The position numbers and the translations under genes are program-made. A stretch of DNA of 64,000 bases from Epithemia pelagica (lineage: Eukaryota; Protista; Bacillariophyta), in assembly GCA_946965045.2 (NCBI GenBank), contig OX337242.1, forward strand, positions 1,302,001 through 1,366,000. Reading direction: 5' to 3'. Position 1 is the first letter of the stretch; the number at the start of each line of letters is the position of its first letter. The notes below the pieces were generated by a model. The model made no database searches and had not been told where the DNA came from. It worked only from the letters and a program-made list of their open reading frames with translations. This document shows, one piece after another, positions 2,956 to 60,591 of this stretch.

Positions 2956-4092
2956 TTAAATACCGGGGGCCATGGAGCGGAGCTTCTCCAAAATGTCACT
3001 AGGAACGAGCCCTTCCAATAGAATCGGTTCTCCGGACGGCTCCTCCAGGCAAATTGGACTGTAGGAGATCCTTGTTCGAATGCCCTCGCGGAAGGTCAGA
3101 CAATCGTAGGCGCGGGCCGCAGTACCGTGCTGAGCCAATTTCTTTTTCTTGTACCAGACCACGTCACCCTCGACACAATAGTCGTTGGGGTTTCCAAATC
3201 GACCACAAGGGAAGGGCTCCTTTGTCATTGGGTTGACAAATACAGCCGAGAAGTGAGGCTCGTGGTCGCCCTTGCCTGGTTTCATCCATGTTATATAATC
3301 CTTGTTTCCAGCAGATATACGACGAGGAACATCGAACAACCATGCGTGCAAGGTTTGGCATGGAGCCTGGGTAAGACTTGTGGGACGAGACGGTGGAGTG
3401 ACAGCGGGGGCTGATGCACCATTGGCTGTGCCATGGCGTGGCGAGGACGAAGCGGCGTAGAATCTGCTTGAGTTCTCTGGCTCATTACCAGAATGAGGCG
3501 TCACCGTGGACACACTGTCCGCCGACGGAATCACGTGCACTTCCGTTGTCTGACTAGGATGATGGTTATCCCGCAATGTGGCCATTCCGTCACCTGACCT
3601 TTCTTCTACAATCAAGGTGAGACAACAACCAAGCCCTGATGGGACAACACTATTTTTAGCAATCTTCAACATACCTTGATACTGCTGGGTGTGAAAAGGA
3701 TTGTGGCTTGGCAGGTTTGTTTGCAAAAAGGGAGTTCCCTGGGCCAGCGAAGCCATCATGTCCGATGTACCTAATTGAACATGACGGTTGCTTGCGCGTA
3801 CACTCGAAGAGGAGAAAGAGATGTCCATTCCATCCATAGGACTCTGTGTTGGTGGAGCCTCTCCATGGCCATGCTTTTGAGGGAATGACTGTACATGCGA
3901 AGAAGCATCAGAGAACTGGTTGTGTGAAGCAGCGCTGGAGAGTGAAGCAGCGCTGGAGAAACCAAGTGTCGGTGCTGCAGAAGAAGCGTCATTTTGCGTG
4001 AAGTCGGCAGTCATCATGTTGGTTTCTTGACCATAAAAGTTTCCCGTGGGGACCTCAGGCATCATGTTTGGCGTTCGACCATCAGCTTGCAT
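2956..4092 (-). CDS. Protein with C-terminal divergent dsRBD-like domain (copy A, domain ~3085-3357)
   Basis: 378-aa ORF with low-complexity N-terminus. C-terminal LHAW...YITW...H...FSAVFVNP.T.E.FP.GRFG...WYKKKKLAQHGTAARAYDCL matches three other ORFs in the window. Confidence 0.7.
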   Translation of the reverse strand: MQADGRTPNMMPEVPTGNFYGQETNMMTADFTQNDASSAAPTLGFSSAASLSSAASHNQFSDASSHVQSFPQKHGHGEAPPTQSPMDGMDISFSSSSVRASNRHVQLGTSDMMASLAQGTPFLQTNLPSHNPFHTQQYQGMLKIAKNSVVPSGLGCCLTLIVEERSGDGMATLRDNHHPSQTTEVHVIPSADSVSTVTPHSGNEPENSSRFYAASSSPRHGTANGASAPAVTPPSRPTSLTQAPCQTLHAWLFDVPRRISAGNKDYITWMKPGKGDHEPHFSAVFVNPMTKEPFPCGRFGNPNDYCVEGDVVWYKKKKLAQHGTAARAYDCLTFREGIRTRISYSPICLEEPSGEPILLEGLVPSDILEKLRSMAPGI

Positions 4093-4333
4093 GGTTACTG
4101 GAAGTGGAGAAATGAAAACTATGAGACAAAACGCACATGTATTTCAAGTTTTGGTGAAAAACACGTACCTCCACTCTTACAATGCACAATTTCAGACTTT
4201 TGTGTGAAAGTGTGCGTCACTTGATTGATTGATATCTTTTCAATCTGCGTACTTCACACCAACTACCAAGAACGATCGACGCACCAGCCCATAGCGAATT
4301 TGTTCCGTCCTTGCTTTCAATGGCCCTTGTTTA

Positions 4334-6301
4334 TCAGCGACGAAACGAAGCTTGAACCTCTTTTATACGTTCAAGGACGTCTGGTGGTAGGTAATCAGGG
4401 AGATTGAGTCGATCCACGGACGGAGTCTCCAAACAAACAGCCTCGTATGGAACTCCCAGTCTCACGGACTGACGGTACTGTAGACAATCGTACGCTCGGG
4501 CGGCCGCCGCGGTTTCGGCACCTTTCTTGTTGAAAAACCAAATAATAGAAGTCAACTCTGGATCCGTTTGCTCCACAACAAACTGATCCTCACTTCCATA
4601 ACGAGCAGATGGGAAGCATTCTCCTGACGTTGGGTCCACAAAAATACTAGAAAATCTCTTGAGATGACAGGGACCGCCATTATCCCAAGTCACGTAATTG
4701 TGTGCGCCAATAGAGACTCGCATTTCCTGGCTAAACCATTTGTAGAGGCTATTCCGGACTTGTAGATTGGATACACGGGATGTTGGGGACGAGTGTGAAT
4801 TTACCGATGGAGATGGCGGTTGCGGTGAGGGTTCTGCGTGGCTGGCTTGTGCGAATGGTCCCGGTGTCGCTTCTTGACCAACATCACTGCGTCTACCTCC
4901 GGATAGAAGTGCATTAAAAATATCGTCTTTTGTCATCAAATTTTCCCCAAAAGAAGGTCCATACGTTTCGAGTAGAATTTGCCGGAGTTGTGGAATCGAC
5001 AGTTGACGCAAGGACTCTACGGAACGTTCCTCCCCTCGCGGAGAAGGATCCACAGCACTTCGACGACTCCCTTTCAAGTAGTTTACCAGTTCGGAATGTT
5101 GCATGCCATGGCAGTTGTGATTCGTCGGTAGCAACGACTGTATCTCATCCATACTCAGTCGATCCAATTCATGGTACAATCGAGCATGCATGCGTTCCAG
5201 ACGTCCACGCTCAAACTCCGGATCGTCCGTTTCCAGTTCCCAGCGACAGGTTGGGCATGAGCAGTGTTTCCTCAACCACGTATTAATGCAGTTTCGGTGA
5301 AAGCCATGTTTGCAAGGAAGATGAACAACGGCATCTGCTAGCTTGTACGTTTGACAGCAAATTTCACAGCTCTCGTTCGCATCGAGATGGTGTTGGCGGA
5401 TACGCGTTACTGGCAAGCTATTCACAACCCGTTCGGAAGCACGAGGAGATGCTCTTGGTTGCCCAGTTGCTTCCTCTAACGAAGCCTGCATGGCTGCTCT
5501 TAGTTGTTCTTCTTCCAGATTATGACTTGGAGGTACGTCCGCCAGGGAGTTATTCATTGCCTCTGTGAGATCGGCATCAAACATACCTTGTACTTCTTCC
5601 GCATTCATTGAATCTAGCAATGGATCTTGGTCGACTGGAGAGGTGGAGGAGGGTGGCTCTGCAAAAATGCGATTCACTCCCCAATCAACAGCGACCTCAA
5701 CCGACTCTTGACCTCCATGAGGGACACTTGTTGTCCAAGGATTCGTATCCTCCCTGTGTGCCGTCGCACCGTGCCTTTCAGAGGCATGTTGCGGGTGAAG
5801 AACATGCCCACTGCCCAAAAGCTGACTGTTGATTCCTGACGGAGCCGAACGAGAGGTCCTCTCGGTGGCGGCACCACTTTGGTCATGACGCAAAGAAACA
5901 TTTTGCGGCGAGTCAACGGGGCCTTGTGTGTATCCGAGGCTTTCCATCAGGTCGACACCACCGGATGTTGGATTTCCCGGTGACGTTGAATGTTCTTGAG
6001 AGAGAGCAGTCGCAGTACCTCGTTCGAGTGATTCTTGCTCTTCAACCCAAAATGAGTTTGGACGACGAGTCGGTCCTTCCTGAGAGTGTGTGGATACAGG
6101 TGGTGGGGATGCTTCGGTTGGGGAACTAGGCTCCTCGACGGATTCTGCGAATACCAAAGGAATGGAGTGATTTTCATCATGTTCGCTTGGAGATTTTGCA
6201 GCCGTCTCTGTACTAGGACCACCACCACCACCTAGCAAGGAAATCCATTGGTCATCGTCCGGAGGAGCTCCTTCGTCGCAATCTTCAAACGCCGCGTCCA
6301 T
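4334..6301 (-). CDS. UIM + RING-H2 + dsRBD-like protein (putative E3 ubiquitin ligase; copy B)
   Basis: First ATG at 6301. UIM-like EEEQLRAAMQASLEE (~5471-5515); RING-H2 CEIC..CKHGFHRNC..W..CPTC (~5243-5368); shared dsRBD-like domain at ~4469-4756. Confidence 0.8.
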   Translation of the reverse strand: MDAAFEDCDEGAPPDDDQWISLLGGGGGPSTETAAKSPSEHDENHSIPLVFAESVEEPSSPTEASPPPVSTHSQEGPTRRPNSFWVEEQESLERGTATALSQEHSTSPGNPTSGGVDLMESLGYTQGPVDSPQNVSLRHDQSGAATERTSRSAPSGINSQLLGSGHVLHPQHASERHGATAHREDTNPWTTSVPHGGQESVEVAVDWGVNRIFAEPPSSTSPVDQDPLLDSMNAEEVQGMFDADLTEAMNNSLADVPPSHNLEEEQLRAAMQASLEEATGQPRASPRASERVVNSLPVTRIRQHHLDANESCEICCQTYKLADAVVHLPCKHGFHRNCINTWLRKHCSCPTCRWELETDDPEFERGRLERMHARLYHELDRLSMDEIQSLLPTNHNCHGMQHSELVNYLKGSRRSAVDPSPRGEERSVESLRQLSIPQLRQILLETYGPSFGENLMTKDDIFNALLSGGRRSDVGQEATPGPFAQASHAEPSPQPPSPSVNSHSSPTSRVSNLQVRNSLYKWFSQEMRVSIGAHNYVTWDNGGPCHLKRFSSIFVDPTSGECFPSARYGSEDQFVVEQTDPELTSIIWFFNKKGAETAAAARAYDCLQYRQSVRLGVPYEAVCLETPSVDRLNLPDYLPPDVLERIKEVQASFRR

Positions 6302-6726
6302 GAGAAAGGTGTTTGTTGTATGCAATCCGCCGATGTTCGCGGGGGGCTTCTAGACTTTGCAGTGAAGGGAATGAACTGCGACTCCAATCTCCTAGACTCC
6401 GTGGGAGTTTTTGTTGCGAGTCTACAAAGTGCTGACGGTCCAACTCCAAACACATGGAACGCTTCTATCCCGTAAGACGATCATGAGGTGGGCGTACCAA
6501 CGATGCACATGGTTTTTCGTTTCCTGCCTATCGTCATGGTCCATGAAATAGACGGATCGAAAGACGTTGACAACCGATAATGTCATATCGATGTCTCATT
6601 GAAGTCGTCCCTGTGTCACAGCGCGTCTCTAAGATCGTGATGGATCTTTTCTTGTTGGATTGGATGGACGACATGCCAACAGAATTGGACCAACAAAACA
6701 ATCTTACGATTTGTCATAGAGTTATA

Positions 6727-8094
6727 ATGGTCAAAGTCCAAGCATCGTTTGAGAGTCTTTGTGTCCTTTTGTTGGTATCTGCATCATCGACGCTTTCATT
6801 GTCGCGTCCTGTTGAACATCGGATATCACGGCGTCAATGGTTGAGAGTGCTCCCCGCCTTGCCTTCCACACTGTTATGGCATCGTCAGGAAGATGACTCG
6901 AGAGCCAACGCTGCCATTGTGGATGAACCCACCGCTTTCAAACGGCCGTTGGGCCCCTCGCTGGCCCCCGAATATTTTCAATCACCAATCGACACTGCCC
7001 CAAGCGCCGGACGGTCGTACTTCCCGACCCTTACACCACCCTTTCAAAACAGAGCCACGTTCCGCTACACGGTGGGTCGCAATACGTGGGCCTTGGAACA
7101 GTTGCTCACCTTTGTCAATGTCACGGCGTCGATTCGCTGTCACGTCGTGAAATTGTAGTCCACGGGGGGACTGTGGGTGCACAGTCCTCAATGGCCGACG
7201 GGAGAATTGTGTCACTTGTTGAATGACTTGGGTGCACCCGTCCAACACATTGTCCTCCCCTGCAATGCCTTGGAACACAAGGCACCGATGAAAGCCTTTG
7301 TGCAACGGTACCCGGAGGCAAGCGTGTGGATATCACCCGGTCAGTATGGACCCTTTGGATCGTGTGGTCAAACACAAAAGGATCCAATGACTATGGGATA
7401 TCGAGTCGATGGTGTTCTGGGAAGTCCAGAAATGGCCTTAGAACCTCCACCATGGGCCGATGAATTTGACATGGCTACCTTGTACTTGGACTTACCCAAG
7501 AATGCCGGACCCGTTTCGGAAGTGGCGTTTTGTCATCGTCCAACCAAAACCTTGATTGCTACAGACGCGGTCGTGTACATTCCTAATACCGATACAGCTC
7601 GTTTAGACTTGTTTGAGACGTACTTTGCTCCCAAAGTAGTGCAAGACGATCCCACTTTTTGGCCACGAACAGTCTTACAGGCAGTCTTTTTGCCCCTTCG
7701 TACCGACCAGGATAATCCGATGCGATATCCTGGCTATGAGGCCATTCGAGAGAGGCTGATTCGAGCTCCCATTCTTCGAGCCTTTGTGGATGCTCGTGCA
7801 CCTATCCAAGTACAAGAATGGACCAACCAGATTGCCCAATGGGACTTTGATCGAATCCTGACCAGTCATTTTGCGTCACCCATTTGGGCCACACCCCGTG
7901 AGTTTGTCCAAGCCTTTGCCTACTTGTCGCCATCCTCCGAATCCGGCAGTGACGATGACAATCGTTTGACGCTTCCTCCCATTGCCTGCCAAGATTGGGA
8001 GTTGTTGCAGAATCTCAATGCTGTAATTTCCGACTACAATTTGGGAGAACCCGCCATTTTCGATTATCAGCGGGGCTGTGTAGAAACCAATTAA
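6727..8094 (+). pseudogene. DUF4336-family (metallo-beta-lactamase-like) gene interrupted by an in-frame TAG at 7156-7158
   Basis: ORFs 6580-7158 and 7177-8094 are in the same frame and read IRCHVVKL*STGGLWVHSP, a continuous DUF4336-like motif. Downstream: EHK, EVAFCHRPTKTLIATDAV, WDFDRILTSHF. ATG 6727 starts a signal-peptide-like sequence. No intron can remove the stop. Confidence 0.7.
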
Positions 8095-8647
8095 TTTCGA
8101 TGAAAACAAGAGTAACATTAAAAGGAAGACAATCGTGGAGATGCTTGGATCAATAAACGATTGGGAAACTTCCGCATGGGCATGAGGTTGTATTTACATT
8201 GCAGGAGGTTCGTTTTCTTTTCTGCTATGGTCTGCGCCGTCATCCGCTATTGATGGATGGAACGCCTTTTGTGAAGAGAAAGCGCTTTCTTTGAAGTACT
8301 TCTTGTAACGCGATGAGGAGGGCGTGATTTAAGGCATGACCAATTTACAAGAAGAGGCTGTTTCGATTCATCCATGAGTAAGGTTTGAGACCGTTTTTGT
8401 GATGCATCGATCGATGCTCATTCTTGGATGTAAATAAGGTCTTGATGGTAGTTAGACACGCAAAAGTTACAAATAGCAACATCGATATATCTTGTACAGA
8501 TTCTACATCTATTGTTGAAAGGTATCTTTGCCTTTGGCTGTGCTCTGTATATTGTCATGAATGGAGGAAAATTGCACATTGTCGTCATGTTTGTTTCCCT
8601 CCAACCAAGGTGGTGGTTGTAGGCCCTCTACTCTATCTGCTGCTCTT

Positions 8648-50855: not shown

Positions 50856-52703
50856 GGTTGTCTGAATAAAGGTGGTTTTGTTGGTTTTGATAGAGAAGGG
50901 GGGTTGGGGGTTGGTGTTCGTACACAAAATAGTACGAATCATGGTAGGATTTGGACCTACAAGAACAAGAAAAGGCATGGCGTCTGGGACCAAGACCAAA
51001 GGCAATATCAGAGATATAATGCTTCTTGCTGAGTTTTGGTCGGGTGAGCAGGAACACACACTCTCAAACTTAAGATCTGTCGAATGGATTGGTCCATACC
51101 GAACAAAAACGATTCTGCGGCTTTCCCCCGAATTTTAGATTGCCCTTCAAGACATGGATAAAAAAAGTGGACCAATTGTACCAAAACAAAGACACTCGGC
51201 ACCGTCGTCAAGAGAGACAAAACTTATCAGAGTGGGGCAATGTATGAGACAATTGCTCCCATGGTCAAGATCCAATCTGCAACCATTGATTATAGCTGCA
51301 CCCTTTGTCCGAACAAACAAGAAATAATAAATCGTGAGCGGTGGACGCATTATTATTTCAATCACACACGATCCTTGTCAAAGCACAACGCAGAGATGGA
51401 ATACAATGATATCTCACCAGTGGAAAGAATTCCCCGTTCGGACACTTGTTTCACCGTGTGCATCCAAAAAGTCTCCTCGCTTCATTCTTGGCCGTAAAAT
51501 CTACAAACCGACTTTTTGCCTCCACAACAGTCCTCACCGTCTCTCCACAAAAGCACAGATGGATCCTTGTCCTGCATGCACAAAGGGAACAAGACCACCC
51601 CCCTGTTCTATTACCAAGCTCCCAGACGTCATGAAAGAAAGAAAGATCGCTTTAATGGATGGAATGCCAGAGCTCTATCCAGACTATCTATATACTCCCA
51701 AGGCGGAGAGTGCTTTGGTTCCGAGTAAGACTGCTGAACTGTCATGAGTCTCATTGCCTCAATCAAGATAACTCCTGCTAACTCTCACGCTTTCGTTGAA
51801 CATTTCCTGGACGCTTCCAGTTCTTGTTCCATGTACCATCATGGCGTGCGTTCACAAGCACCTCATGCTCGAGGTATCTGGGTACAATCCATACAGGTTT
51901 CGCTGAGGAGACGGGCAACACTCTCAAATACAAACCATGTCGGGTTGTGCGCCGTAGACATGTGATTTGCTTTAGAAAAGATTAAGGACACATGCGTCCA
52001 GGCTCCAACCTCGTCTCTCACACGATCGCGGTGATTCGGGCACACGAAACGGGTTTGCTATCATTACTTTTTCTCTCATTCATTCTTGGGGACACAGTTT
52101 TAGTGACCGAGAATTTGAGTTGAGAAACGAATCCGTCCCTACAGCTTCAAACGGCTGATTCGAATCTCCGAAGCTGGATGCAAGAGGGGAACTCTTTGGG
52201 ACAATGTCTTGGTGGGTGGAACACGTATGGACAGGACGTTCTGCCGTGATGTTCCTTCCTGCCAACTAGAAGACAGGACATGAGACACTTCTTGTTTGTG
52301 AGCACTGTGGATGCATCAAGTCCTGACTCAAAACTCTAGACCAGTGCGGCGTTTTATACGACCAGAAACCACACAACAATCCAGAAACCGCCATACTCCA
52401 AAGATGATGAGACAAATTGGAAAAGTATCCATCTGTATTCGTCATTTGAAGGAAAAGAGTTTGTAGATGTCGATTGCTAGGAGCTCTATCCTCTCTTGTT
52501 GTCGAACTCAACTACTCCTTGGAACTACTCCTACGAATACAATAGATTGACAAAATTTTTGTGAGCACGAAGACGACGGGCTTAAGGATAAAGGGTTAGT
52601 AAGCCCCAACCAAATTTTATCCCCGCAAAGATTCGCCATTAGAGGTCCGCAGAAACAAGGACAGCAGACAGACTAATCCTTAACCTCAACGTACCAACTC
52701 CAC

Positions 52704-52749
52704 CGCCTGTCACACCTTTGTACACGCCTGTCACACCTTGTACACGCCT
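52704..52749. repeat. Subterminal ~20-bp direct repeat of the MULE
   Basis: cgcctgtcacacct(t)tgtaca occurs twice plus a partial copy, just inside the left IR. Confidence 0.75.
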
Positions 52750-52853
52750 AAGTAATCGTCAAAGAAATAACCGTTCTCTTTCAAATCTGAAAGTCTTCAG
52801 ATCGGCATTGGAAGATATTTCGCTATTGCATTCAATTCATTGAGTATCTAGCC

Positions 52854-55800
52854 ATGGACGACAACAACAACGATGGAATGCTACATGATCAAATTCATCA
52901 ACAGTTGGATCGATACTTCAACTCCTTAGAAACAGAATGGACTTCTCCAATGACCTTTGCAATGCACACTGGTGATGATTGCATATGCAACCAAACAACA
53001 AGTTGCTTTGACATTTGCGCTTTCATTGGATGGGGCCCTCAAGCGGAGCACGTCAAAGGGAACTTCGCATATTTCTGTCGAACAGCATACCCTCCATGTA
53101 CAAACCCAAGCAATATATTCGATGAAAATGGGTCCTATTTGAAGCTAAAAGCTGATATCTCCAAAACTGCGATGTGTGGAGGATTTTCTATTGTCTCCAA
53201 TGGTACATCACACAAAAAGGCGTTGGCCACTCGCAAGGCTTTCCCTAAAGGAAGTGAACCTCCGTACATGCAACGTACCTTCACTTGTGACCGCTACCGT
53301 CGCTATACCAACAAACGGAAGCGAGTATCTGTGGGAGACCCCAACATGGAACACCGTAAGGTTTCACTTCACAATGACAAGAAAGGCAACAGTAGGGGGG
53401 TTGATGGCAAAAAGGGACCAAGAAAAAACGTGACAACACGTGCATTACAAAATGAAGACACATGCTCCTTTCGCTTTGATATATTTGTCGATATGTATGG
53501 CTTTTATGTCAAGCGTAGTTCTGGATCTGTCACCCACTGTAATCATATGAAGCGGTTGCCTGCAGATATTCCAATAAAACTTCGTCATTTGACGTCAGAA
53601 CAGAGACGGCGTACAGCTGAACTTGGTAAAGCCCTGACTCGTCCAGCTAATGGTCGAAACTTCTTCCATGCAAATCACGATCTCACACTGACTCCACAAC
53701 AACTTCGGTATGCATTTCACAACTTTGCATCAGATTCAAAATATCACTATAATGGTATTGAAGTAGGTGCTGGAGCAATTGTTGAATGGTTGCGATCAAC
53801 ACCAGACATAAGTTACTGCATATGGGGGGCAAAACCTCCTAATGTCGTAAACGCTCAGGTCCAGCGACAAGCTGGCTTAATCTTCAGTGAAAACCAGGTC
53901 GATTGTGGAGTGAGAGATATATCAGACCTTACTAATTTTTGTCAGGAAGTTCTTCAAGAATACACTGCTGATATGGAAAATTTAGGTCTACAAGAAAACC
54001 AGCATTTCTTCATCGCTTGTGCATGGATCACCAACAAGGAAAAGAGAATGTTCCGCTTATTCCCTCATGTCCTCAAGATTGATGTTACAGAGGGAACAAA
54101 CAAGGAGTCACGACCACTTCTTACAGTTTCTATCCGATCCACCTTTGGGAAATATATTATAATTCTGCGGATGTTTCTACGTGATCAGCGTCAGGGAACT
54201 TTCCGATGGGTATTTTCCTTTGCCCTGCCAAAACTTCTTGGAGATCAATGGACATCCCAAATTCAAAGTGTCATAACCGATGGTGACTCACATGAGATTG
54301 TTGAACTTGAAGAGGCCTGTCGTCGTTACATGCCAAATTGCTTTCGTGTTCGTTGTGGGTGGCATATTGTTCATAAGGGATGGTTACGACATTGCTCATT
54401 CGGGAATGCCATTGACTCAACGTACATTCGACAATACAAACTGTTTTGCTACACTGTGAAACAGTGGTGTTACACGTTCATGTACCCAAGATATTGTGAA
54501 AATGAAAATGAGTTGGTGATATCGAAGTGCCTGCTCTTGGCCTACATTCATTCACGGCAGGTTCGAAAGTTCCTTCCAGACAACTTACGTTGGAAGGTGC
54601 AAAACTTTTTGATTGGGTATGTTTTTATTCACGATCGACAACTTGTGCACTATTACAGACAAAATCTTCGTCATTATGAAGAGTGCACTAACAGCAGTCA
54701 CGAAGGTACGAACTGTGGTATCAAAGAGCACTCAGCTCCAGTTTTACCAGGTGGAACAGTCCAAGGCAATGCAGCGTTGTTGAAGTTTCAATCAGACATT
54801 CTAATCAATTCACAATTACGTCTCGCAGCAACGCGAGTCGAAGCTAAATCTGTTTGGATGAAGGAGAATCTCCTACCACTCAACGGAATGGTAACTGAAT
54901 TGTGCCATGATTTAGTCCACAATGCATGGACGCGCCGTGACAAATATGCAATTCGACGTGATAGATCATCACCATGGAACTGGCATGTCAAAGTGGTAGA
55001 TACCAACTGTTTGGATACAGAGAAGAAACGCCTTCATCCAGTATGGCATCGTACAAGAACGGTAACATTGGATTCTTCTGGGCGTTTGTTGTGTTCCTGC
55101 GGTACGTTTCAAAGGTGTGGTTACCCATGTTTGCATCAAGCCGCAGTACTGTGTTTTGAATGCCGGGACTACCAAGGCTTCACCCATCACAATGTGAGTA
55201 TTGTGTGGTGGAAGAAATACGTTTTCTTTGGCTTTCGCAATGAGAACAATGATACTGAGAATGCTCTAAATGATTGTTTGAAAGAACTATTAACAAATGA
55301 TATTACTGGACCAAAGTTACCATTTGACACGGGACCAACATGGTGTGAGAAAGAGGAATGGTGCTACTGCCCAACCGGTTTTGATTTGCCGGATTGGGAA
55401 ACTGAAGCATGCCTGAATTATTCGCAAGAACAAATAACAAGAGCCCTCACAACATTTTCTGGTTTCTTTAACTACACTGAAAATGTACCTTTGGACCAAG
55501 ACAACCTGACACAGGAGTCGTTTACTGCTCCGGATGGGATAAATCCACAATATGGGCGCTCAATGCCTTCACTTCAAGGAGTCAGGGATAATCCATGCCC
55601 AAGTGATAGTGAATCTCTCCAAGACGACAATGTATCTCATGATGAGTCTAATCGTGGCCTTGAAAACGACACAATTGACAATGTTGATGAAGGAATTGGG
55701 GACATATTTGTTGATGATACTGATGATGCAACTGATCTCCACACAAAATGTGATGAGGTGTATGGCAAAGCATTAGCGCCCAATTCATTTGTTCAACTAA

Positions 55801-56039
55801 TGAGAGAAGAGTTGAACGAAATCAAGAAACTGTGCCGTTCAGCGAATTACAATAATAATGGAGTGGATTTGATGAAACCACTTGTTTGTCTGCGTGAATT
55901 AACAAGATCAATCCGCAAGGACATGGCTACTCGAAGTAATCATAATCATGGGCAAGAGTGGGTTTCTTCGAATTCAGAGCATTCCCGCCATTGCCGTAGA
56001 TTCCGCGGTGCTAGATTGGGGTTAACCAAATTTGATTGA
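52854..56039 (+). CDS. MULE DDE transposase with SWIM zinc finger
   Basis: Intact 1061-aa ORF. KIDVTEGTN (D, ~54081), ITDGD (D, ~54279), CGWH (CxxH), SHEGTN (E, ~54702), and SWIM CSC..CGYPCLH (~55092-55136). Confidence 0.9.
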   Translation: MDDNNNDGMLHDQIHQQLDRYFNSLETEWTSPMTFAMHTGDDCICNQTTSCFDICAFIGWGPQAEHVKGNFAYFCRTAYPPCTNPSNIFDENGSYLKLKADISKTAMCGGFSIVSNGTSHKKALATRKAFPKGSEPPYMQRTFTCDRYRRYTNKRKRVSVGDPNMEHRKVSLHNDKKGNSRGVDGKKGPRKNVTTRALQNEDTCSFRFDIFVDMYGFYVKRSSGSVTHCNHMKRLPADIPIKLRHLTSEQRRRTAELGKALTRPANGRNFFHANHDLTLTPQQLRYAFHNFASDSKYHYNGIEVGAGAIVEWLRSTPDISYCIWGAKPPNVVNAQVQRQAGLIFSENQVDCGVRDISDLTNFCQEVLQEYTADMENLGLQENQHFFIACAWITNKEKRMFRLFPHVLKIDVTEGTNKESRPLLTVSIRSTFGKYIIILRMFLRDQRQGTFRWVFSFALPKLLGDQWTSQIQSVITDGDSHEIVELEEACRRYMPNCFRVRCGWHIVHKGWLRHCSFGNAIDSTYIRQYKLFCYTVKQWCYTFMYPRYCENENELVISKCLLLAYIHSRQVRKFLPDNLRWKVQNFLIGYVFIHDRQLVHYYRQNLRHYEECTNSSHEGTNCGIKEHSAPVLPGGTVQGNAALLKFQSDILINSQLRLAATRVEAKSVWMKENLLPLNGMVTELCHDLVHNAWTRRDKYAIRRDRSSPWNWHVKVVDTNCLDTEKKRLHPVWHRTRTVTLDSSGRLLCSCGTFQRCGYPCLHQAAVLCFECRDYQGFTHHNVSIVWWKKYVFFGFRNENNDTENALNDCLKELLTNDITGPKLPFDTGPTWCEKEEWCYCPTGFDLPDWETEACLNYSQEQITRALTTFSGFFNYTENVPLDQDNLTQESFTAPDGINPQYGRSMPSLQGVRDNPCPSDSESLQDDNVSHDESNRGLENDTIDNVDEGIGDIFVDDTDDATDLHTKCDEVYGKALAPNSFVQLMREELNEIKKLCRSANYNNNGVDLMKPLVCLRELTRSIRKDMATRSNHNHGQEWVSSNSEHSRHCRRFRGARLGLTKFD

Positions 56040-56084
56040 ATAAAGTAACAATTGATCAATTAATAAATTTTATTTTACCTATAT

Positions 56085-57353
56085 TTAGTTATCCTTTTTT
56101 TGTAATTGGTTCAAAATACACTCTTCGATTCCAGTGAGGGGGATGGTATTGTCGTTTTTTCCAACAACCGCTGTCTTGAGGTAGAACGATATGCAAAAAA
56201 CATCCTCACTGGTAACCTTCTTCGAAACACAGTGATAGACTTGGGGGTTGAAGAACAGAATGTCCATGTTTCGAAGGGCAACTGCATGTCCACATTGTGG
56301 AAAGACAAAATAGCAAAGAATATTGTTTCCAACTGACTCTGGTTCAGTGGCCATGGCCATCACTGCAGAATAACCAAAGTCTTGGTCGGTGTGTGCACCA
56401 AGAAATACATTCCTTCCAAAAGCGATTGACGAGAAAAATGTGCTGTCGTTGCTCCCGTCTGAGAAAGTTGGTATACCTTGAACAGCCTTGGTAATGGAAT
56501 AGCTCTGTATTATAGACCAGTCCATCCACTCGCAAAATAAATGCTTGACTCGTCGCACCAATTTCATCAATGCCTGCTTGTCTTTGCCTGTCATGAGTTT
56601 CTTTTTGGAATCAACAATTCCGTGTCGACCTTGATTTGCATGTTTGCCAATGGTTACATACGAAGATTGATGTGATTCCATTCCGACATATCGAAACTTC
56701 CCTCGTTGTTGGAAAGAACATGCAGATTCCAATGATTCAAAGACAGAAATTACTTTCTTCTGTACTGGGAACGATAAATGATTCTGTCCTGGTACCTTGA
56801 GAAACACAGGCAGTGTGGAATCACTGGGTTGATATAGAGCTCCACCATCAGTATTGGTAGTATGGAACTTAGAAAGAGACACAAATATCGGTCGGACGGT
56901 TTTGGTGCCACTGCCTTCAAAGTATTCATTGTCTGTACTATCACTTTTGAATGTGACTGTGTTCCTCATCAAGTAGTCTGGTGTCATTTGTGAAGCCAAT
57001 GGAGCCTCGGGCACTTTCTCAAGAGTATCTTGTTTGTCATTCTTTCTCTTGTTTCTCTGTCTGTTGCATTTCCTGAAAGGTGTAGCACATCCTTGAATGA
57101 TAGCTTCTGAGACCTGTGTTCGACGTGAAGAATTATTTCTTGACTTGTACGTATGAACAACTGAAGAAACATCAATGTGTTGTCGATCTTGTAGATGCGA
57201 AAGTATTCTTCCCATGGTGGGTATCGTTAACAGCCCCGCCCTTCTTATGGAGGCCTCCCCTAAAGGAGGACCTCCCAAAGGCAAAGAGGTAGATCCATTG
57301 TTGTCAGGTTGCTGACTCAGGGTCAAACGGCCTCTCTTGACTGGTTTGGACAT
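56085..57353 (-). CDS. Fe(II)-dependent dioxygenase-fold protein, TET/JBP-like, carried by the MULE
   Basis: First ATG at 57353. AHTDQD (HxD, ~56385-56393), YFVFPQCGHAVALRNMDILFFNP, YHCVS (distal His ~56232) and CISFYLK; basic N-terminal half. Confidence 0.65.
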   Translation of the reverse strand: MSKPVKRGRLTLSQQPDNNGSTSLPLGGPPLGEASIRRAGLLTIPTMGRILSHLQDRQHIDVSSVVHTYKSRNNSSRRTQVSEAIIQGCATPFRKCNRQRNKRKNDKQDTLEKVPEAPLASQMTPDYLMRNTVTFKSDSTDNEYFEGSGTKTVRPIFVSLSKFHTTNTDGGALYQPSDSTLPVFLKVPGQNHLSFPVQKKVISVFESLESACSFQQRGKFRYVGMESHQSSYVTIGKHANQGRHGIVDSKKKLMTGKDKQALMKLVRRVKHLFCEWMDWSIIQSYSITKAVQGIPTFSDGSNDSTFFSSIAFGRNVFLGAHTDQDFGYSAVMAMATEPESVGNNILCYFVFPQCGHAVALRNMDILFFNPQVYHCVSKKVTSEDVFCISFYLKTAVVGKNDNTIPLTGIEECILNQLQKKDN

Positions 57354-57370
57354 TTCAATACTCAAGCAAC

Positions 57371-58976
57371 CAAAGAGAGCTTCCAAACAGTATCAGCCTT
57401 CCCAAAAGAGTAGGATGGAGAAGCCCCAAATTTCCAGGGCTGTATCTTGTGATGGAAATGAGATAAAAGGACGAACAGGGATGATTTAGAATTGTCTTGG
57501 CATGGTCCAGGTTGCCCAAGTGTCAGAATGGGCGTAGCACTTACGGTTTCAAAGAGAGCTTCCAAACAGTATCAGCCTTCCCAAAAGAGCAGGATGGAGA
57601 AGCCCCAAATTGCCAGGGCTGTATCTTCTGATGGAAATGAGATAGAAGCAAGACTAGGAATGATTTAGAATTGTCTTGGCATGGTCCAGGTTGCCCAAGT
57701 GTCAGAATGGGTGTAGCACTTACGGTTCCAAAGAGAGCTCCCAAACAGTATCAGCCTTCCCAAAAGAGCAGGATGGAGAAGCCCCAAATTGCCAGGGCTG
57801 TATCTTGTGATGGAAATGAGATAAAAGGACGAACAGGGATGATTTAGAATTGTCTTGGCATGGTCCAGGTTGCCCAAGTGTCAGAATGGGCGTAGCACTT
57901 ACGGTTTCAAAGAGAGCTCCCAAACAGTATCAGCCTTCCCAAAAGAGTAGGATGGAGAAGCCCCAAATTGCCAGGGCTGTATCTTCTGATGGAAATGAGA
58001 TAAAAGGACGAACAGGGATGATTTAGAATTGTCTTGGCATGGTCCAGGTTGCCCAAGTGTCAGAATGGGCGTAGCACTTACGGTTTCAAAGAGAGCTTCC
58101 AAACAGTATCAGCCTTCCCAAAAGAGTAGGATGGAGAAGCCCCAAATTGCCAGGGCTGTATCTTGTGATGGAAATGAGATAAAAGGACGAACAGGGATGA
58201 TTTAGAATTGTCTTGGCATGGTCCAGGTTGCCCAAGTGTCAGAATGGGCGTAGCACTTACGGTTTCAAAGAGAGCTTCCAAACAGTATCAGCCTTCCCAA
58301 AAGAGCAGGATGGAGAAGCCCCAAATTGCCAGGGCTGTATCTTCTGATGGAAATGAGATAGAAGCAAGACTAGGAATGATTTAGAATCGTCTTGGCATGG
58401 TCCAGGTTGCCCAAGTGTCAGAATGGGTGTAGCACTTACGGTTCCAAAGAGAGCTCCCAAACAGTATCAGCCTTCCCAAAAGAGTAGGATGGAGAAGCCC
58501 CAAATTGCCAGGGCTGTATCTTGTGATGGAAATGAGATAAAAGGACGAACAGGGATGATTTAGAATTGTCTTGGCATGGTCCAGGTTGCCCAAGTGTCAG
58601 AATGGGCGTAGCACTTACGGTTTCAACGAGAGCTTCCAAACAGTATCAGCCTTCCCAAAAGAGCAGGATGGAGAAGCCCCAAATTGCCAGGGCTGTATCT
58701 TGTGATGGAAATGAGATAAAAGGACGAACAGGGATGATTTAGAATTGTCTTGGCATGGTCCAGGTTGCCCAAGTGTCAGAATGGGCGTAGCACTTACGGT
58801 TTCAAAGAGAGATTCCAAACAGTATCAGCCTTCCCAAAAGAGCAGGATGGAGAAGCCCCAAATTGCCAGGGCTGTATCTTCTGATGGAAATGAGATAGAA
58901 GCAAGACCAGGGATGATTTAGAACCGTCTTGGCACGGACCAGGCCACCCAAGTGTCAGATTGGGCATAGCACTTAC
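57371..58976. repeat. Tandem array of nine 179-bp units
   Basis: Units start at 57371, 57550, 57729, 57908, 58087, 58266, 58445, 58624 and 58803. Two variants (aaaaggacgaacaggg and agaagcaagactagga) are ordered A B A A A B A A B-like. Confidence 0.97.
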
Positions 58977-59499
58977 TCTCCAGAAGTTGTGCTTATTGGA
59001 ATGAAAGGATTGTTTTGGTGAAGCTGTTGCTGCTGATACAGATGCTGGTGAAGCTTGTGCTGCTGCTGTTGTTGATGAGAAGTTGAGGTGTGTATTGCTG
59101 TGGTGTGGAGAAAAGGAGGGATAGGACAGGATTTTTCTTCAATGTGGGTGGCAGTTGGTCTGGGCAAGCCGGCCTGGTAGGCAACCGTGCACAGTTTTGG
59201 CTACATTAAGGTTAAGGATTAGTCTGTCTGCTGTCCTTGTTTCTGCGGACCTCTAATGGCGAATGGTCGTACTATTATTTAATAATATTCCGAACACCAT
59301 AGCAACAGTAGAAAAGACATGGACATTTTGCAAACTCCTCTAGAGCTCTCTCTTTTTGTGTTTCGTTGCGACTGTTTGCAGCGTCGAGCGAGAGCGCCAT
59401 CAAGGAGAGAGAGAGTGTGTGTGTGAGAGAGAGAGAGAGACTTTCCGAGCGACTACGCAACAGGACAAGGGGCATACAAACTCGAGTCTATCGAGTCCA

Positions 59500-60591
59500 A
59501 TGGAAGCATGTGTCAAGCGCCCCATCAAGCCAGAACAAGAAGCACCAGCCCTTGTTCGTTCCAAAACCCACAGTGACGACGATGAGGATGATGCCCGATC
59601 AGTCTTTAGTGAACTCACAGACCCCATGTCTGACCAAGATCATGCTGCCGCAGTGACAACTGCAAAACCCAAACACGGTGCTTCGTCGTCGTCTCGGCCT
59701 ACAACAACCAGAGCTGCCTCACCTCGACGACCACACAAGATCCCTGTTGAGCAGCAACAACCACAAAGTCCAGATCGGAGAAGTGCCTACCACCAAAAGT
59801 CCTTGTCATCTCGTAACATACCATCCCCCAGCAAAATGACTGCAACCGTTCGAAACCACCAGCAAAACAACCATTTGAGCATGTCGGATCATGCACTGCA
59901 CAGTCCCAACCGGAACCGGCCAACCTTTCAACCATCACAGCAAACAATTGCCGACGATCCCTATGGGAATTTGACGGCCGAACCGTACAAAAAGTATTCG
60001 TCTCGTAGTTTGTTGCAAATGTGTGGGAGTTGTGCTCCCCGACGATTTAGTATGGGCAATAGTTCTCGAGGCTCTTCGGGTTGTGGTGGTGGTGGTGGAC
60101 GTCGAGGAGGAGGAGGAGACTATAGTGAGAGCCACAATGACGACGACGATGATTCCTTGGGTGACGAAATACCCCAATTTGAAATGATCATGGCCATTGT
60201 CAGTTCCTGGGAGGGGATCAAAACCATTGATGGATACGAAGAAAAACTTTCGGAACAAATCTTGCTGCGAATGATGGAACTCGACTCGCATGTGCGCAAG
60301 GATTTGGGTCTCTTGTCCATTCGGAGTCCGGAATTTTGGACCGTGAGTGAAAAGATTATTTCCGTCATTGATGGACTAGTCTCCTTTTTGGGACCCGACT
60401 TGGAAGACTTTTACGACAAAATTTCCGATGTCGGGGACAAGTACCGATCCGATGGCTTTAAGGAATACTTGTTGGCACCCGCATTGGTCGATGCCCTCAA
60501 ATATGTCGTGCCCGAACACGAGTTTCCACCCGAAACGCAACGGGATTGGACGACCGTCATGAACTTTTTGGTTTCCAAAATGGAAGCTTGA
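59500..60591 (+). CDS. Protein with disordered N-terminus and C-terminal globin-like domain
   Basis: First ATG at 59500. C-terminal AIVSSWE...LGPDLEDFYDKISDVG...WTTVMNFLVSKM follows the globin helix pattern seen in diatom globins. Confidence 0.65.
   Translation: MEACVKRPIKPEQEAPALVRSKTHSDDDEDDARSVFSELTDPMSDQDHAAAVTTAKPKHGASSSSRPTTTRAASPRRPHKIPVEQQQPQSPDRRSAYHQKSLSSRNIPSPSKMTATVRNHQQNNHLSMSDHALHSPNRNRPTFQPSQQTIADDPYGNLTAEPYKKYSSRSLLQMCGSCAPRRFSMGNSSRGSSGCGGGGGRRGGGGDYSESHNDDDDDSLGDEIPQFEMIMAIVSSWEGIKTIDGYEEKLSEQILLRMMELDSHVRKDLGLLSIRSPEFWTVSEKIISVIDGLVSFLGPDLEDFYDKISDVGDKYRSDGFKEYLLAPALVDALKYVVPEHEFPPETQRDWTTVMNFLVSKMEA

Follow-up and report, generated by a model that had tools for sequence, protein, structure and literature searches.

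A stretch of 64,000 nucleotides from the diatom Epithemia pelagica (assembly GCA_946965045.2, contig OX337242.1, positions 1,302,001 to 1,366,000; hereafter the window) contains, at positions 52631-59264, a DNA transposon with two genes, a Mutator-type transposase and a predicted Fe(II) dioxygenase. The element is bounded by terminal inverted repeats (TIRs), the arms of which (52631-52693 and 59202-59264) are 63 nt long and match at 97%, the outermost 56 nt forming a perfect run. The 30-nt tip of the TIR occurs twice in the window, both times at an end of the element, against an expectation of zero from shuffled sequences. Between the arms, the transposase gene and the second open reading frame (ORF2) converge, and a tandem array precedes ORF2. 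The latter was called from a TTG at 57386, inside the array; its first ATG, at 57353, yields a protein of 422 aa. An earlier note on this DNA had described perfect 56-bp inverted repeats enclosing an intact DDE/SWIM transposase, a tandem array and, tail-to-tail with the transposase at a distance of 45 bp, an intact ORF with an HxD...H motif, and the whole of this anatomy is borne out (Table 1).

The transposase (ORF1) has no internal stop, and its 1061 aa correspond to full length when compared with homologues of 1047-1073 aa. Two Pfam families match it above their cut-offs, namely PF21056 (ZSWIM1-3 RNaseH-like; 35.2 bits, cut-off 27.2) and PF04434 (SWIM; 25 bits, cut-off 19.6, aa 746-766). 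Its score for PF10551 (MULE), 27.4 bits, lies 0.2 below the cut-off of 27.6, and this domain is present in all database homologues of ORF1 (55/55). Three blocks, KIDVTEGTN, ITDGDSHE and NSSHEGTN, are kept at 24% identity in the transposase of a related family of the same genome (L002, see below) and may represent the DDE motifs, an assignment that is our own reading rather than that of a tool. The nearest named relative is a transposase of Fragilaria crotonensis. Among the marks of Mutator-like elements (MULEs, or MuDR elements), the MULE-type RNase H-like DDE domain, the C-terminal SWIM finger and the long TIRs are all present, and the 8-11 bp target-site duplication (TSD) is missing. The SWIM finger is common, though not universal, among MULEs.

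The dioxygenase was placed by its predicted fold. An AlphaFold2 model built from an alignment of homologues reached a predicted local distance score (pLDDT) of 74.6 and a predicted template-modelling score (pTM) of 0.79, with the N-terminal 45 residues disordered. In a Foldseek search of the PDB, the top matches of this model were CcTet, CMD1, NgTET1 and TET2, with CMD1 as the second-best solved structure and FTO/AlkB enzymes next after the TET/JBP group. TET/JBP structures scored 3-7 Z units above AlkB/FTO and covered about 275 residues, vs about 190. Similarly, the top AlphaFold-DB clusters were annotated as "JBP1/TET oxygenase" and as fungal "Tet-like" proteins, the best fold matches in Swiss-Prot were JBP2, JBP1 and NgTET1, and the language-model neighbours of ORF2 beyond its own unnamed clusters bear PF12851 (Tet_JBP) or PF20515 (2OG-FeII_Oxy_6, the fungal "Tet-like 2OG-Fe(II) oxygenase" model). 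The suggestion of the earlier note that ORF2 is of the TET/JBP type is thus upheld at the level of fold, the modelled double-stranded beta-helix of ORF2 being nearer to TET/JBP enzymes than to the remaining 2OG oxygenases.

The motifs point in the same direction. H321, D323 and H374, the residues of the predicted iron triad, are invariant in a 25-sequence alignment, as are R217, Y391 and K393; together with the triad, about 25 further positions are invariant among dioxygenases that share only 23-30% identity. More widely, a motif of the HxDxD type was found in 160 and a YLK[TS] motif in 117 of 170 family members. In characterized enzymes, an N-terminal arginine (TET2 R1261, CMD1 R244) binds the C1 carboxylate of 2-oxoglutarate (2OG) and stacks on the base (PMC7854593). 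R217 is the candidate for this residue in ORF2 and appears to be placed at the right distance, 104 residues before H321 as compared with 101 in CMD1 and 121 in TET2 (PMC7854593), which is a comparison of spacing only. Y391 and K393, in turn, would match the aromatic-x-His/Arg pair by which the flipped base is kept in place. Basic clusters that resemble nuclear localization signals (NLS) are also conserved. The TET/JBP assignment draws on fold, language-model features and motifs, because sequence searches stayed below significance. Taken together, the model suggests a TET/JBP-type dioxygenase rather than a generic one, with an intact iron centre and an atypical co-substrate pocket.

The same arrangement of genes recurs elsewhere in the genome. 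The closest homologues of ORF2 are 97% (P0001), 45% (P0002), 43% (P0003) and 38% (P0004) identical to it, and a single assembly contains them all, on long contigs. At the four corresponding loci (L001-L004), each dioxygenase gene is tail-to-tail with a MULE transposase gene, which has remained intact at two of the loci (L002 and L004) and has decayed at the other two (L001 and L003). Four families, one of them that of the window element, therefore have a common layout, in which an array, a dioxygenase and a convergent transposase are enclosed by TIRs. The TIRs of the sister families measure 34-45 nt, and their arrays, situated directly upstream of the dioxygenase, have a period of 178-180 bp and 6.5-9 copies. 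On a tree, all five dioxygenases carried by MULEs group as a single clan with a long stem (SH-aLRT support 100). Among the closest relatives, none was seen that stands alone as a host gene.

Between the window and L001 copies, the dioxygenase differs by 10 synonymous and 13 non-synonymous changes, for a ratio of rates (dN/dS) of 0.37 (binomial p=0.019). Among the families, the proportion of non-synonymous differences (pN) is 0.38-0.45, and that of synonymous differences (pS) is saturated at 0.75-0.83. By these comparisons of sequences, the dioxygenase is under purifying selection, and its linkage to MULEs is old within the genome. Transposase and dioxygenase have not diverged in step: compared with L002, the transposase of the window element is 24% and its dioxygenase 45% identical, and compared with L004 these values are 50% and 38%. 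Strict co-divergence of the two genes was ruled out by these discordant identities and by the differing topologies of their trees, a pattern that suggests either that MULE lineages have exchanged modules or that rates were unequal.

Each of the four related loci has features of its own. The L001 element (L001:7343-13318) is a sister copy with 98% nucleotide identity to that of the window, in which a 602-bp internal tandem duplication splits the transposase into three ORFs; it has about two array units, one degenerate TIR tip and an intact dioxygenase ORF. In L002, a second repeat (8038-8511; 180 bp, 2.6 copies) lies within the coding region of the dioxygenase and encodes, in frame, an N-terminal repeat of 60 aa. 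An 820-aa ORF located immediately outside the L003 MULE (L003:12937-15399) matches Herpes_ori_bp/AAA_30 (PIF1-like helicase) and may belong to an adjoining Helitron-like element. Finally, a transposase gene of the DDE_Tnp_4 (PIF/Harbinger) type was found at L004:847-2142, at a distance of about 5 kb from the MULE of that locus.

A profile search of 1.84 billion representatives extended the dioxygenase family to 1574 matching cluster representatives, 467 of them at E <=1e-30. No match bears a functional name (nothing beyond "hypothetical"), and the only named organisms are the diatoms Seminavis robusta and Cyclotella cf. meneghiniana. When the ORFs surrounding the gene at 80 metagenome loci were clustered and the recurrent ones scanned, Plavaka transposases were found at 12 loci and Helitron Rep/PIF1 helicases at 15; a MULE transposase was present at a single locus (L079), in a head-to-tail arrangement. 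Among the 29 loci of at least 7 kb, 20 contain a transposon hallmark. On the dioxygenase tree, carrier labels are clustered, yet at least 8 changes are needed vs a minimum of 3, and the MULE carrier state arises twice, L079 being nested among Plavaka-borne sequences. These trees and neighbourhoods indicate that the family is cargo of at least three superfamilies of DNA transposons, with transfers between them.

The earlier note had raised the question of whether ORF2 homologues are linked to transposons, and specifically to MULEs across diatom genomes. Linkage to transposons holds, both in the four MULE families described here and in the Plavaka, Helitron and MULE loci found elsewhere; linkage to MULEs in particular is not general. 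Two related MULEs, of Fragilaria crotonensis (L012) and of a metagenome (L013), are devoid of a dioxygenase, and a tblastn search for a MULE transposase near distant homologues (in Seminavis, Cyclotella and five metagenome or assembly contigs) found none. The idea of a MULE-specific family was therefore ruled out, as its distant members are not MULE-linked and have Plavaka and Helitron neighbours instead.

Other genes recur at these metagenome loci. A pair of genes, one for a ubiquitin hydrolase (UCH) and one for a UCH+RING protein, stands beside the dioxygenase in seven of them (L057:2063-5587, L006, L021, L063, L065, L068 and L075) and co-occurs with a Helitron protein in L006, L068 and L075; the UCH and UCH+RING genes may thus be further Helitron cargo. 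L006 also contains two dioxygenase paralogues in tandem (3785-7385), about 29% and 28% identical to ORF2. In L013 (329-8980), a 48%-identical MULE transposase is tail-to-tail with an ORF of 1081 aa that has no annotation; beyond it is a gene with a SET domain (PF00856, E 6e-7).

Evidence of mobility comes from three public runs of the same organism (X1-X3; DNA-like assemblies with contigs up to 509 kb). All three contain an empty-site allele in which the left flank up to 52630 (...CAAAG) is followed by CTACCT and then by the right flank from 59265 (GGTCGTAC...). The 6 bp CTACCT are absent from the filled allele; they may be the footprint of an excision, or else reflect a deletion at the target site or an indel between haplotypes. 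In the same runs, the TIR tip is also joined to at least four further left flanks, an indication of other insertions. The empty-site allele, the 56-bp perfect TIRs and the two intact ORFs argue for recent mobility of the element. As a separate observation, the summed contig depth, which is not a copy number, was about 6-fold (X1, X2) to 9-fold (X3) higher in the bin of the left TIR (52600-52760) than in the neighbouring bin, which hints at extra TIR-bearing relatives, possibly non-autonomous.

The copies also bear a signature of CpG methylation. Of the 80 substitutions that separate the window and L001 copies, 27 are at CpG, which accounts for 5.8% of sites (p=3e-14). The ratio of observed to expected CpG is lower in the element (0.57), and particularly in the array (0.28), than in the flanks (0.85-0.9), and GpC is not depleted. 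This pattern indicates that copies of the element are, or were, CpG-methylated, which would make a substrate available to the proposed enzyme.

The positions of all these features are collected in Table 1. A scan of positions 52000-60000 with Rfam gave no match. Directly to the right of the element lie low-complexity GA/GT runs (59405-59448) and a 411-aa ORF (59356-60591) for which Pfam gave no match at E <=0.1.

Table 1. Features of the element, in coordinates of the window.
Feature	Position	Strand	Basis
Left TIR, first 56 nt perfect; tip ATTCGCCATTA common to the window element and the L003 family	52631..52693	+	Repeat search
Subterminal 21-bp tandem repeat, 2.2 copies, between left TIR and transposase start	52704..52749	.	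Repeat search
MULE DDE transposase with SWIM zinc finger, intact, 1061 aa	52854..56039	+	ORF, Pfam and homologues
Putative catalytic motifs of the transposase: KIDVTEGTN (aa 408-416), ITDGDSHE (aa 474-481), NSSHEGTN (aa 613-620)	54075..54713	+	Conservation with L002
SWIM zinc finger, CxC...CxH, aa 747-761	55092..55136	+	Pfam and motif
Spacer of 45 bp between the two convergent stop codons	56040..56084	.	ORF positions
Predicted TET/JBP-fold Fe(II) dioxygenase, divergent, 422 aa; basic NLS-like clusters at aa 3-9 and 94-108	56085..57353	-	Fold model and motifs
Predicted catalytic core of the dioxygenase, aa 310-402: IAFGRNVFLGAHTDQDF (H321, D323, D325), FNPQVYHCVS (H374), VFCISFYLKTAVVGKNDN (C387, Y391, K393)	56148..56426	-	Alignment
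Tandem array, nine 179-bp units, directly 5' of the dioxygenase ATG	57371..58976	-	Repeat search
Right subterminal region, array to TIR; candidate promoter and first exon of the dioxygenase transcript	58977..59201	-	Inferred
Right TIR	59202..59264	-	Repeat search

The array (57371-58976; period 179, 9.0 copies, 95% matches) stops 18 bp before the ATG of the dioxygenase gene. The idea that the repeat codes for protein was rejected, since a period of 179 cannot be divided by 3 and the 67-aa ORFs called in it overlap one another in different frames. Across the four families, the arrays are mutually unalignable save for short blocks: AGACA(A/G)TTCTAA(C/A) is common to three families, (C)ATAACTTTC just before GTAAGT is found in three, and TTGNAATTT in all. 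With the units rotated to a common phase, GTAAGT occurs once and only once in each of them on the dioxygenase sense strand, and on this strand the units of the window array also have a TTCTAA(A/C) block. A plausible pyrimidine-rich YAG follows each GTAAGT at a distance of 81-106 nt, and the remaining 74-93 nt of the unit are free of ATG, every ATG of a unit falling in the putative intron part; the YAG acceptors were picked after the sequences had been viewed, so this lack of ATGs is only suggestive. Annotated introns of homologues are of a similar size range (108 nt in Seminavis and about 78 nt in Cyclotella). The number of units is variable, with nine in the window element and about two in L001.

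From these sequences, one could propose that each unit is a short intron (GTAAGT, a TTCTAAC-like branch point and YAG) followed by an ATG-free mini-exon, so that the array would provide a multi-intron leader of the dioxygenase mRNA, or else that it acts in cis as a family-specific platform similar to the targets of VANC, the anti-silencing protein of Arabidopsis VANDAL elements. Either function might help the element to evade silencing based on RNA or on methylation, and these MULEs would insert without a TSD. We regard this set of proposals as doubtful. The array may also be a spacing device of nucleosome length, or a binding platform proper to each family in the manner of the VANC target repeats.

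Cytosine methylation silences transposons in diatoms and, to our knowledge, no enzyme that demethylates or oxidizes 5-methylcytosine (5mC) has been characterized in these organisms. Against this background, the element is probably a full-length, autonomous and recently mobile MULE with a divergent dioxygenase of the TET/JBP family as cargo, the role of which would be to weaken silencing by methylation. Our confidence is high for the anatomy of the element and for the long-term status of the dioxygenase as transposon cargo. It is more reserved for the mechanism directed against methylation, which we put forward tentatively and by analogy with other systems. According to this mechanism, the dioxygenase would enter the nucleus, as its conserved basic clusters suggest, and would oxidize a modified DNA base, most likely 5mC at CpG, on the chromatin of the element itself or more widely. 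Such oxidation would weaken methylation-based silencing and allow transposase and dioxygenase to remain expressed. This anti-silencing role is proposed because of the fold, because the copies are (or were) methylated and because there are precedents.

Several results weigh against this interpretation. No sequence search recovered the TET/JBP family at a significant level: the best Pfam score of ORF2 was 13.8 bits for PF20515 (E 0.06; cut-off 27), this family was also the only one to match any of the 25 homologues, weakly and below threshold in 2 of them, and a profile of the 25 homologues searched against all PDB sequences retrieved no TET, only chance matches (E >0.08). The insertions are atypical for MULEs as well. 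The Mutator superfamily normally generates TSDs of 8-11 bp, and no direct repeat of at least 4 bp was found, at offsets of +/-6, around the window, L003 and L004 copies; the L002 copy gave a spurious 7/1 match only, and the flanks of L001, one end of which is degenerate, are uninformative.

Other reservations concern the chemistry. In TET2 (R1896) and NgTET1 (R289), a C-terminal arginine located 6 residues before the stacking aromatic binds the C5 carboxylate of 2OG (PMC7854593). By the spacing of motifs, this canonical arginine was not found in ORF2: in the strand 385-VFCISFY-391, a valine stands 6 residues before Y391 and a cysteine 2 residues before S389, and the family has C, S or V there throughout. 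The co-substrate, and hence the chemistry, may therefore differ. The base that is oxidized is likewise not fixed by the comparisons, since the best Swiss-Prot matches, JBP1 and JBP2, are thymine hydroxylases and the modelled fold alone does not separate an enzyme acting on 5mC (as TET and CMD1 do) from one acting on thymine (JBP). A review on diatoms reports that 5-hydroxymethylcytosine (5hmC) is undetected in this group and attributes this to the absence of TET (PMC9033121). Finally, the decay of CpG implies that copies have not been kept unmethylated and that any protection is partial.

Given the missing arginine and the JBP matches, the main rival explanation is that the enzyme modifies DNA bases without being a demethylase. 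A stable hypermodified base, produced by a JBP-like hydroxylation of thymine or as a CMD1-like adduct with a co-substrate other than 2OG, would then mark or shield the DNA of the element or alter the local chromatin. In addition to the ranking of JBP2, JBP1 and CMD1 among the fold matches, this explanation can invoke the replacement, in the whole family, of the C-terminal arginine by Cys, Ser or Val together with the invariant lysine two residues past the conserved tyrosine, for CMD1 couples the loss of that arginine's function to a changed co-substrate (PMC7854593); the failure to detect 5hmC in diatoms (PMC9033121) fits it too. However, the CpG methylation signature makes 5mC the obvious substrate at hand. 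Lys/Tyr pairs bind 2OG in other 2OG oxygenases, so that the pair found here is also compatible with the use of 2OG. On balance, we consider a base modifier of this kind unlikely.

A distinctly less probable explanation is that the dioxygenase serves transposition itself, either by modifying bases of the TIRs or the array, which would enable the transposase to bind or cleave ends that are methylated, or by directing repair after excision. The strict linkage with a transposase within TIRs in four families would agree with such a role, as would the unusual insertion chemistry (no TSD, and 6 bp that differ at the empty site). However, the same dioxygenase family rides on Helitrons, which use rolling-circle HUH chemistry, and on Plavaka, which makes a role tied to a single transposition chemistry unlikely; moreover, L001 has retained an intact dioxygenase although its transposase is broken.

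We give a lower probability still to the view that the protein has no catalytic activity, or that its substrate is RNA or protein, and that some other role, for instance in binding, accounts for its retention. The canonical 2OG-binding arginine is indeed missing, demethylases of the FTO/AlkB type are the next-best fold matches, and neither Pfam nor PDB sequences gave a significant match to a characterized enzyme. Nevertheless, an iron triad and about 25 further positions that stay invariant at such low identity are what is expected of an active enzyme, and both the lead of TET/JBP structures over AlkB/FTO, in Z units as in residues covered, and the conserved NLS-like clusters weigh against this view as well.

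Lastly, MULEs do capture fragments of host genes, and two related MULEs in other organisms lack the dioxygenase, but a one-off Pack-MULE event that brought in a host gene of no use to the element, the possibility by which the earlier note would have been overturned, is largely refuted and very improbable, as the gene is intact, under purifying selection and in the same position and orientation in four families with saturated synonymous divergence, its MULE-borne copies form one clan, the wider family is cargo in three superfamilies, and the closest relatives include no stand-alone host copy.

An anti-silencing dioxygenase carried by an autonomous MULE thus remains our preferred interpretation, and its several elements can be set against known systems. 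In Arabidopsis, the MuDR element VANDAL21 (Hiun) encodes the anti-silencing protein VANC (cited in PMC12730594). As with the diatom element, this is a member of the Mutator superfamily with a factor thought to undo its own methylation silencing. The motifs targeted by VANC reportedly lie in tandem repeats, in non-coding parts of VANDAL, and are specific to each family, which parallels the family-specific arrays described above. In contrast, VANC is a DNA-binding protein without an enzymatic fold, whereas the diatom cargo is a predicted dioxygenase.

Maize MuDR has two convergent genes, mudrA and mudrB, which start from opposite ends, and long TIRs. It resembles the diatom element in being a long-TIR Mutator element with an accessory gene convergent with the transposase on the opposite strand. 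However, its product MURB does not have the dioxygenase fold, and MuDR generates 9-bp TSDs, vs none seen at the diatom element. Among stramenopiles, MuDR and Harbinger families of Phytophthora bear SET histone methyltransferase genes (cited in PMC12730594). These MuDR families share with the diatom element the association of a stramenopile host, a MuDR carrier and a chromatin-modifying enzyme as cargo, and differ from it in the cargo and its presumed target (a histone instead of a DNA base). The MULE of L013, with its nearby SET gene, may be a comparable case of a MULE that carries a histone methyltransferase.

In Chlamydomonas, 10 of 11 TET genes are located on a cut-and-paste element or a Helitron, and loss of a region containing a giant-virus TET leads to a build-up of 5mC on the provirus (bioRxiv 10.64898/2026.10.09.758095). 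The transposon and giant-virus TETs of C. reinhardtii, which include CMD1, belong to another algal lineage, are carried by other superfamilies and have no detectable sequence similarity to ORF2. In addition, CMD1 uses vitamin C as co-substrate (PMC7854593).

A close parallel in organization is found in fungi, in which TET cargo is present on about ten superfamilies of DNA transposons (PMC12730594); the known carriers of TET/JBP genes are Kyakuja/Dileera/Zisupton, Plavaka, EnSpm, hAT, Harbinger, IS3EU, ESTA and Helitron (Iyer et al. 2014; Kojima 2025, PMC12730594). Both in these transposons and in the diatom element, an intact dioxygenase of the TET/JBP fold is the second gene inside the ends of a cut-and-paste transposon, several families coexist in one genome, related dioxygenases are found on different superfamilies and bear signs of having been transferred between them, no retrotransposon carrier is seen, and an escape from methylation silencing has been proposed, which for transposon copies is a proposal in both cases. 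The diatom element differs by its stramenopile host and by its enzyme, which falls below the Pfam thresholds for Tet_JBP and PF20515, has no C-terminal 2OG-binding arginine and is preceded by a 178-180-bp array. It also differs by its carrier. The earlier note knew of no described MULE with this cargo, which holds insofar as MuDR/MULE is not among the TET-carrier superfamilies listed in PMC12730594, but TET cargo on DNA transposons is as such known from fungi and Chlamydomonas. Compared with the searchable literature, what is new is the diatom-like host, the MuDR carrier, the extreme divergence of the enzyme and the conserved array, while the general phenomenon was known.

Beyond the single element, these data suggest that diatom-like eukaryotes possess a large clade of enzymes with the TET/JBP fold, so far unannotated and distributed over MULE, Plavaka and Helitron transposons. 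For experiments, the window element provides an intact and polymorphic copy, the catalytic residues H321, D323 and H374, a co-substrate pocket with Lys for Arg and a conserved array, and its dioxygenase could bring to light a new DNA modification in diatoms or yield a compact domain for epigenome editing. The pattern of transposons that carry their own DNA-base oxidase, known from fungi and Chlamydomonas, would in this way come to include stramenopiles and the Mutator superfamily, and its repeated recruitment, whether convergent or horizontal, suggests a general means of counter-defence.

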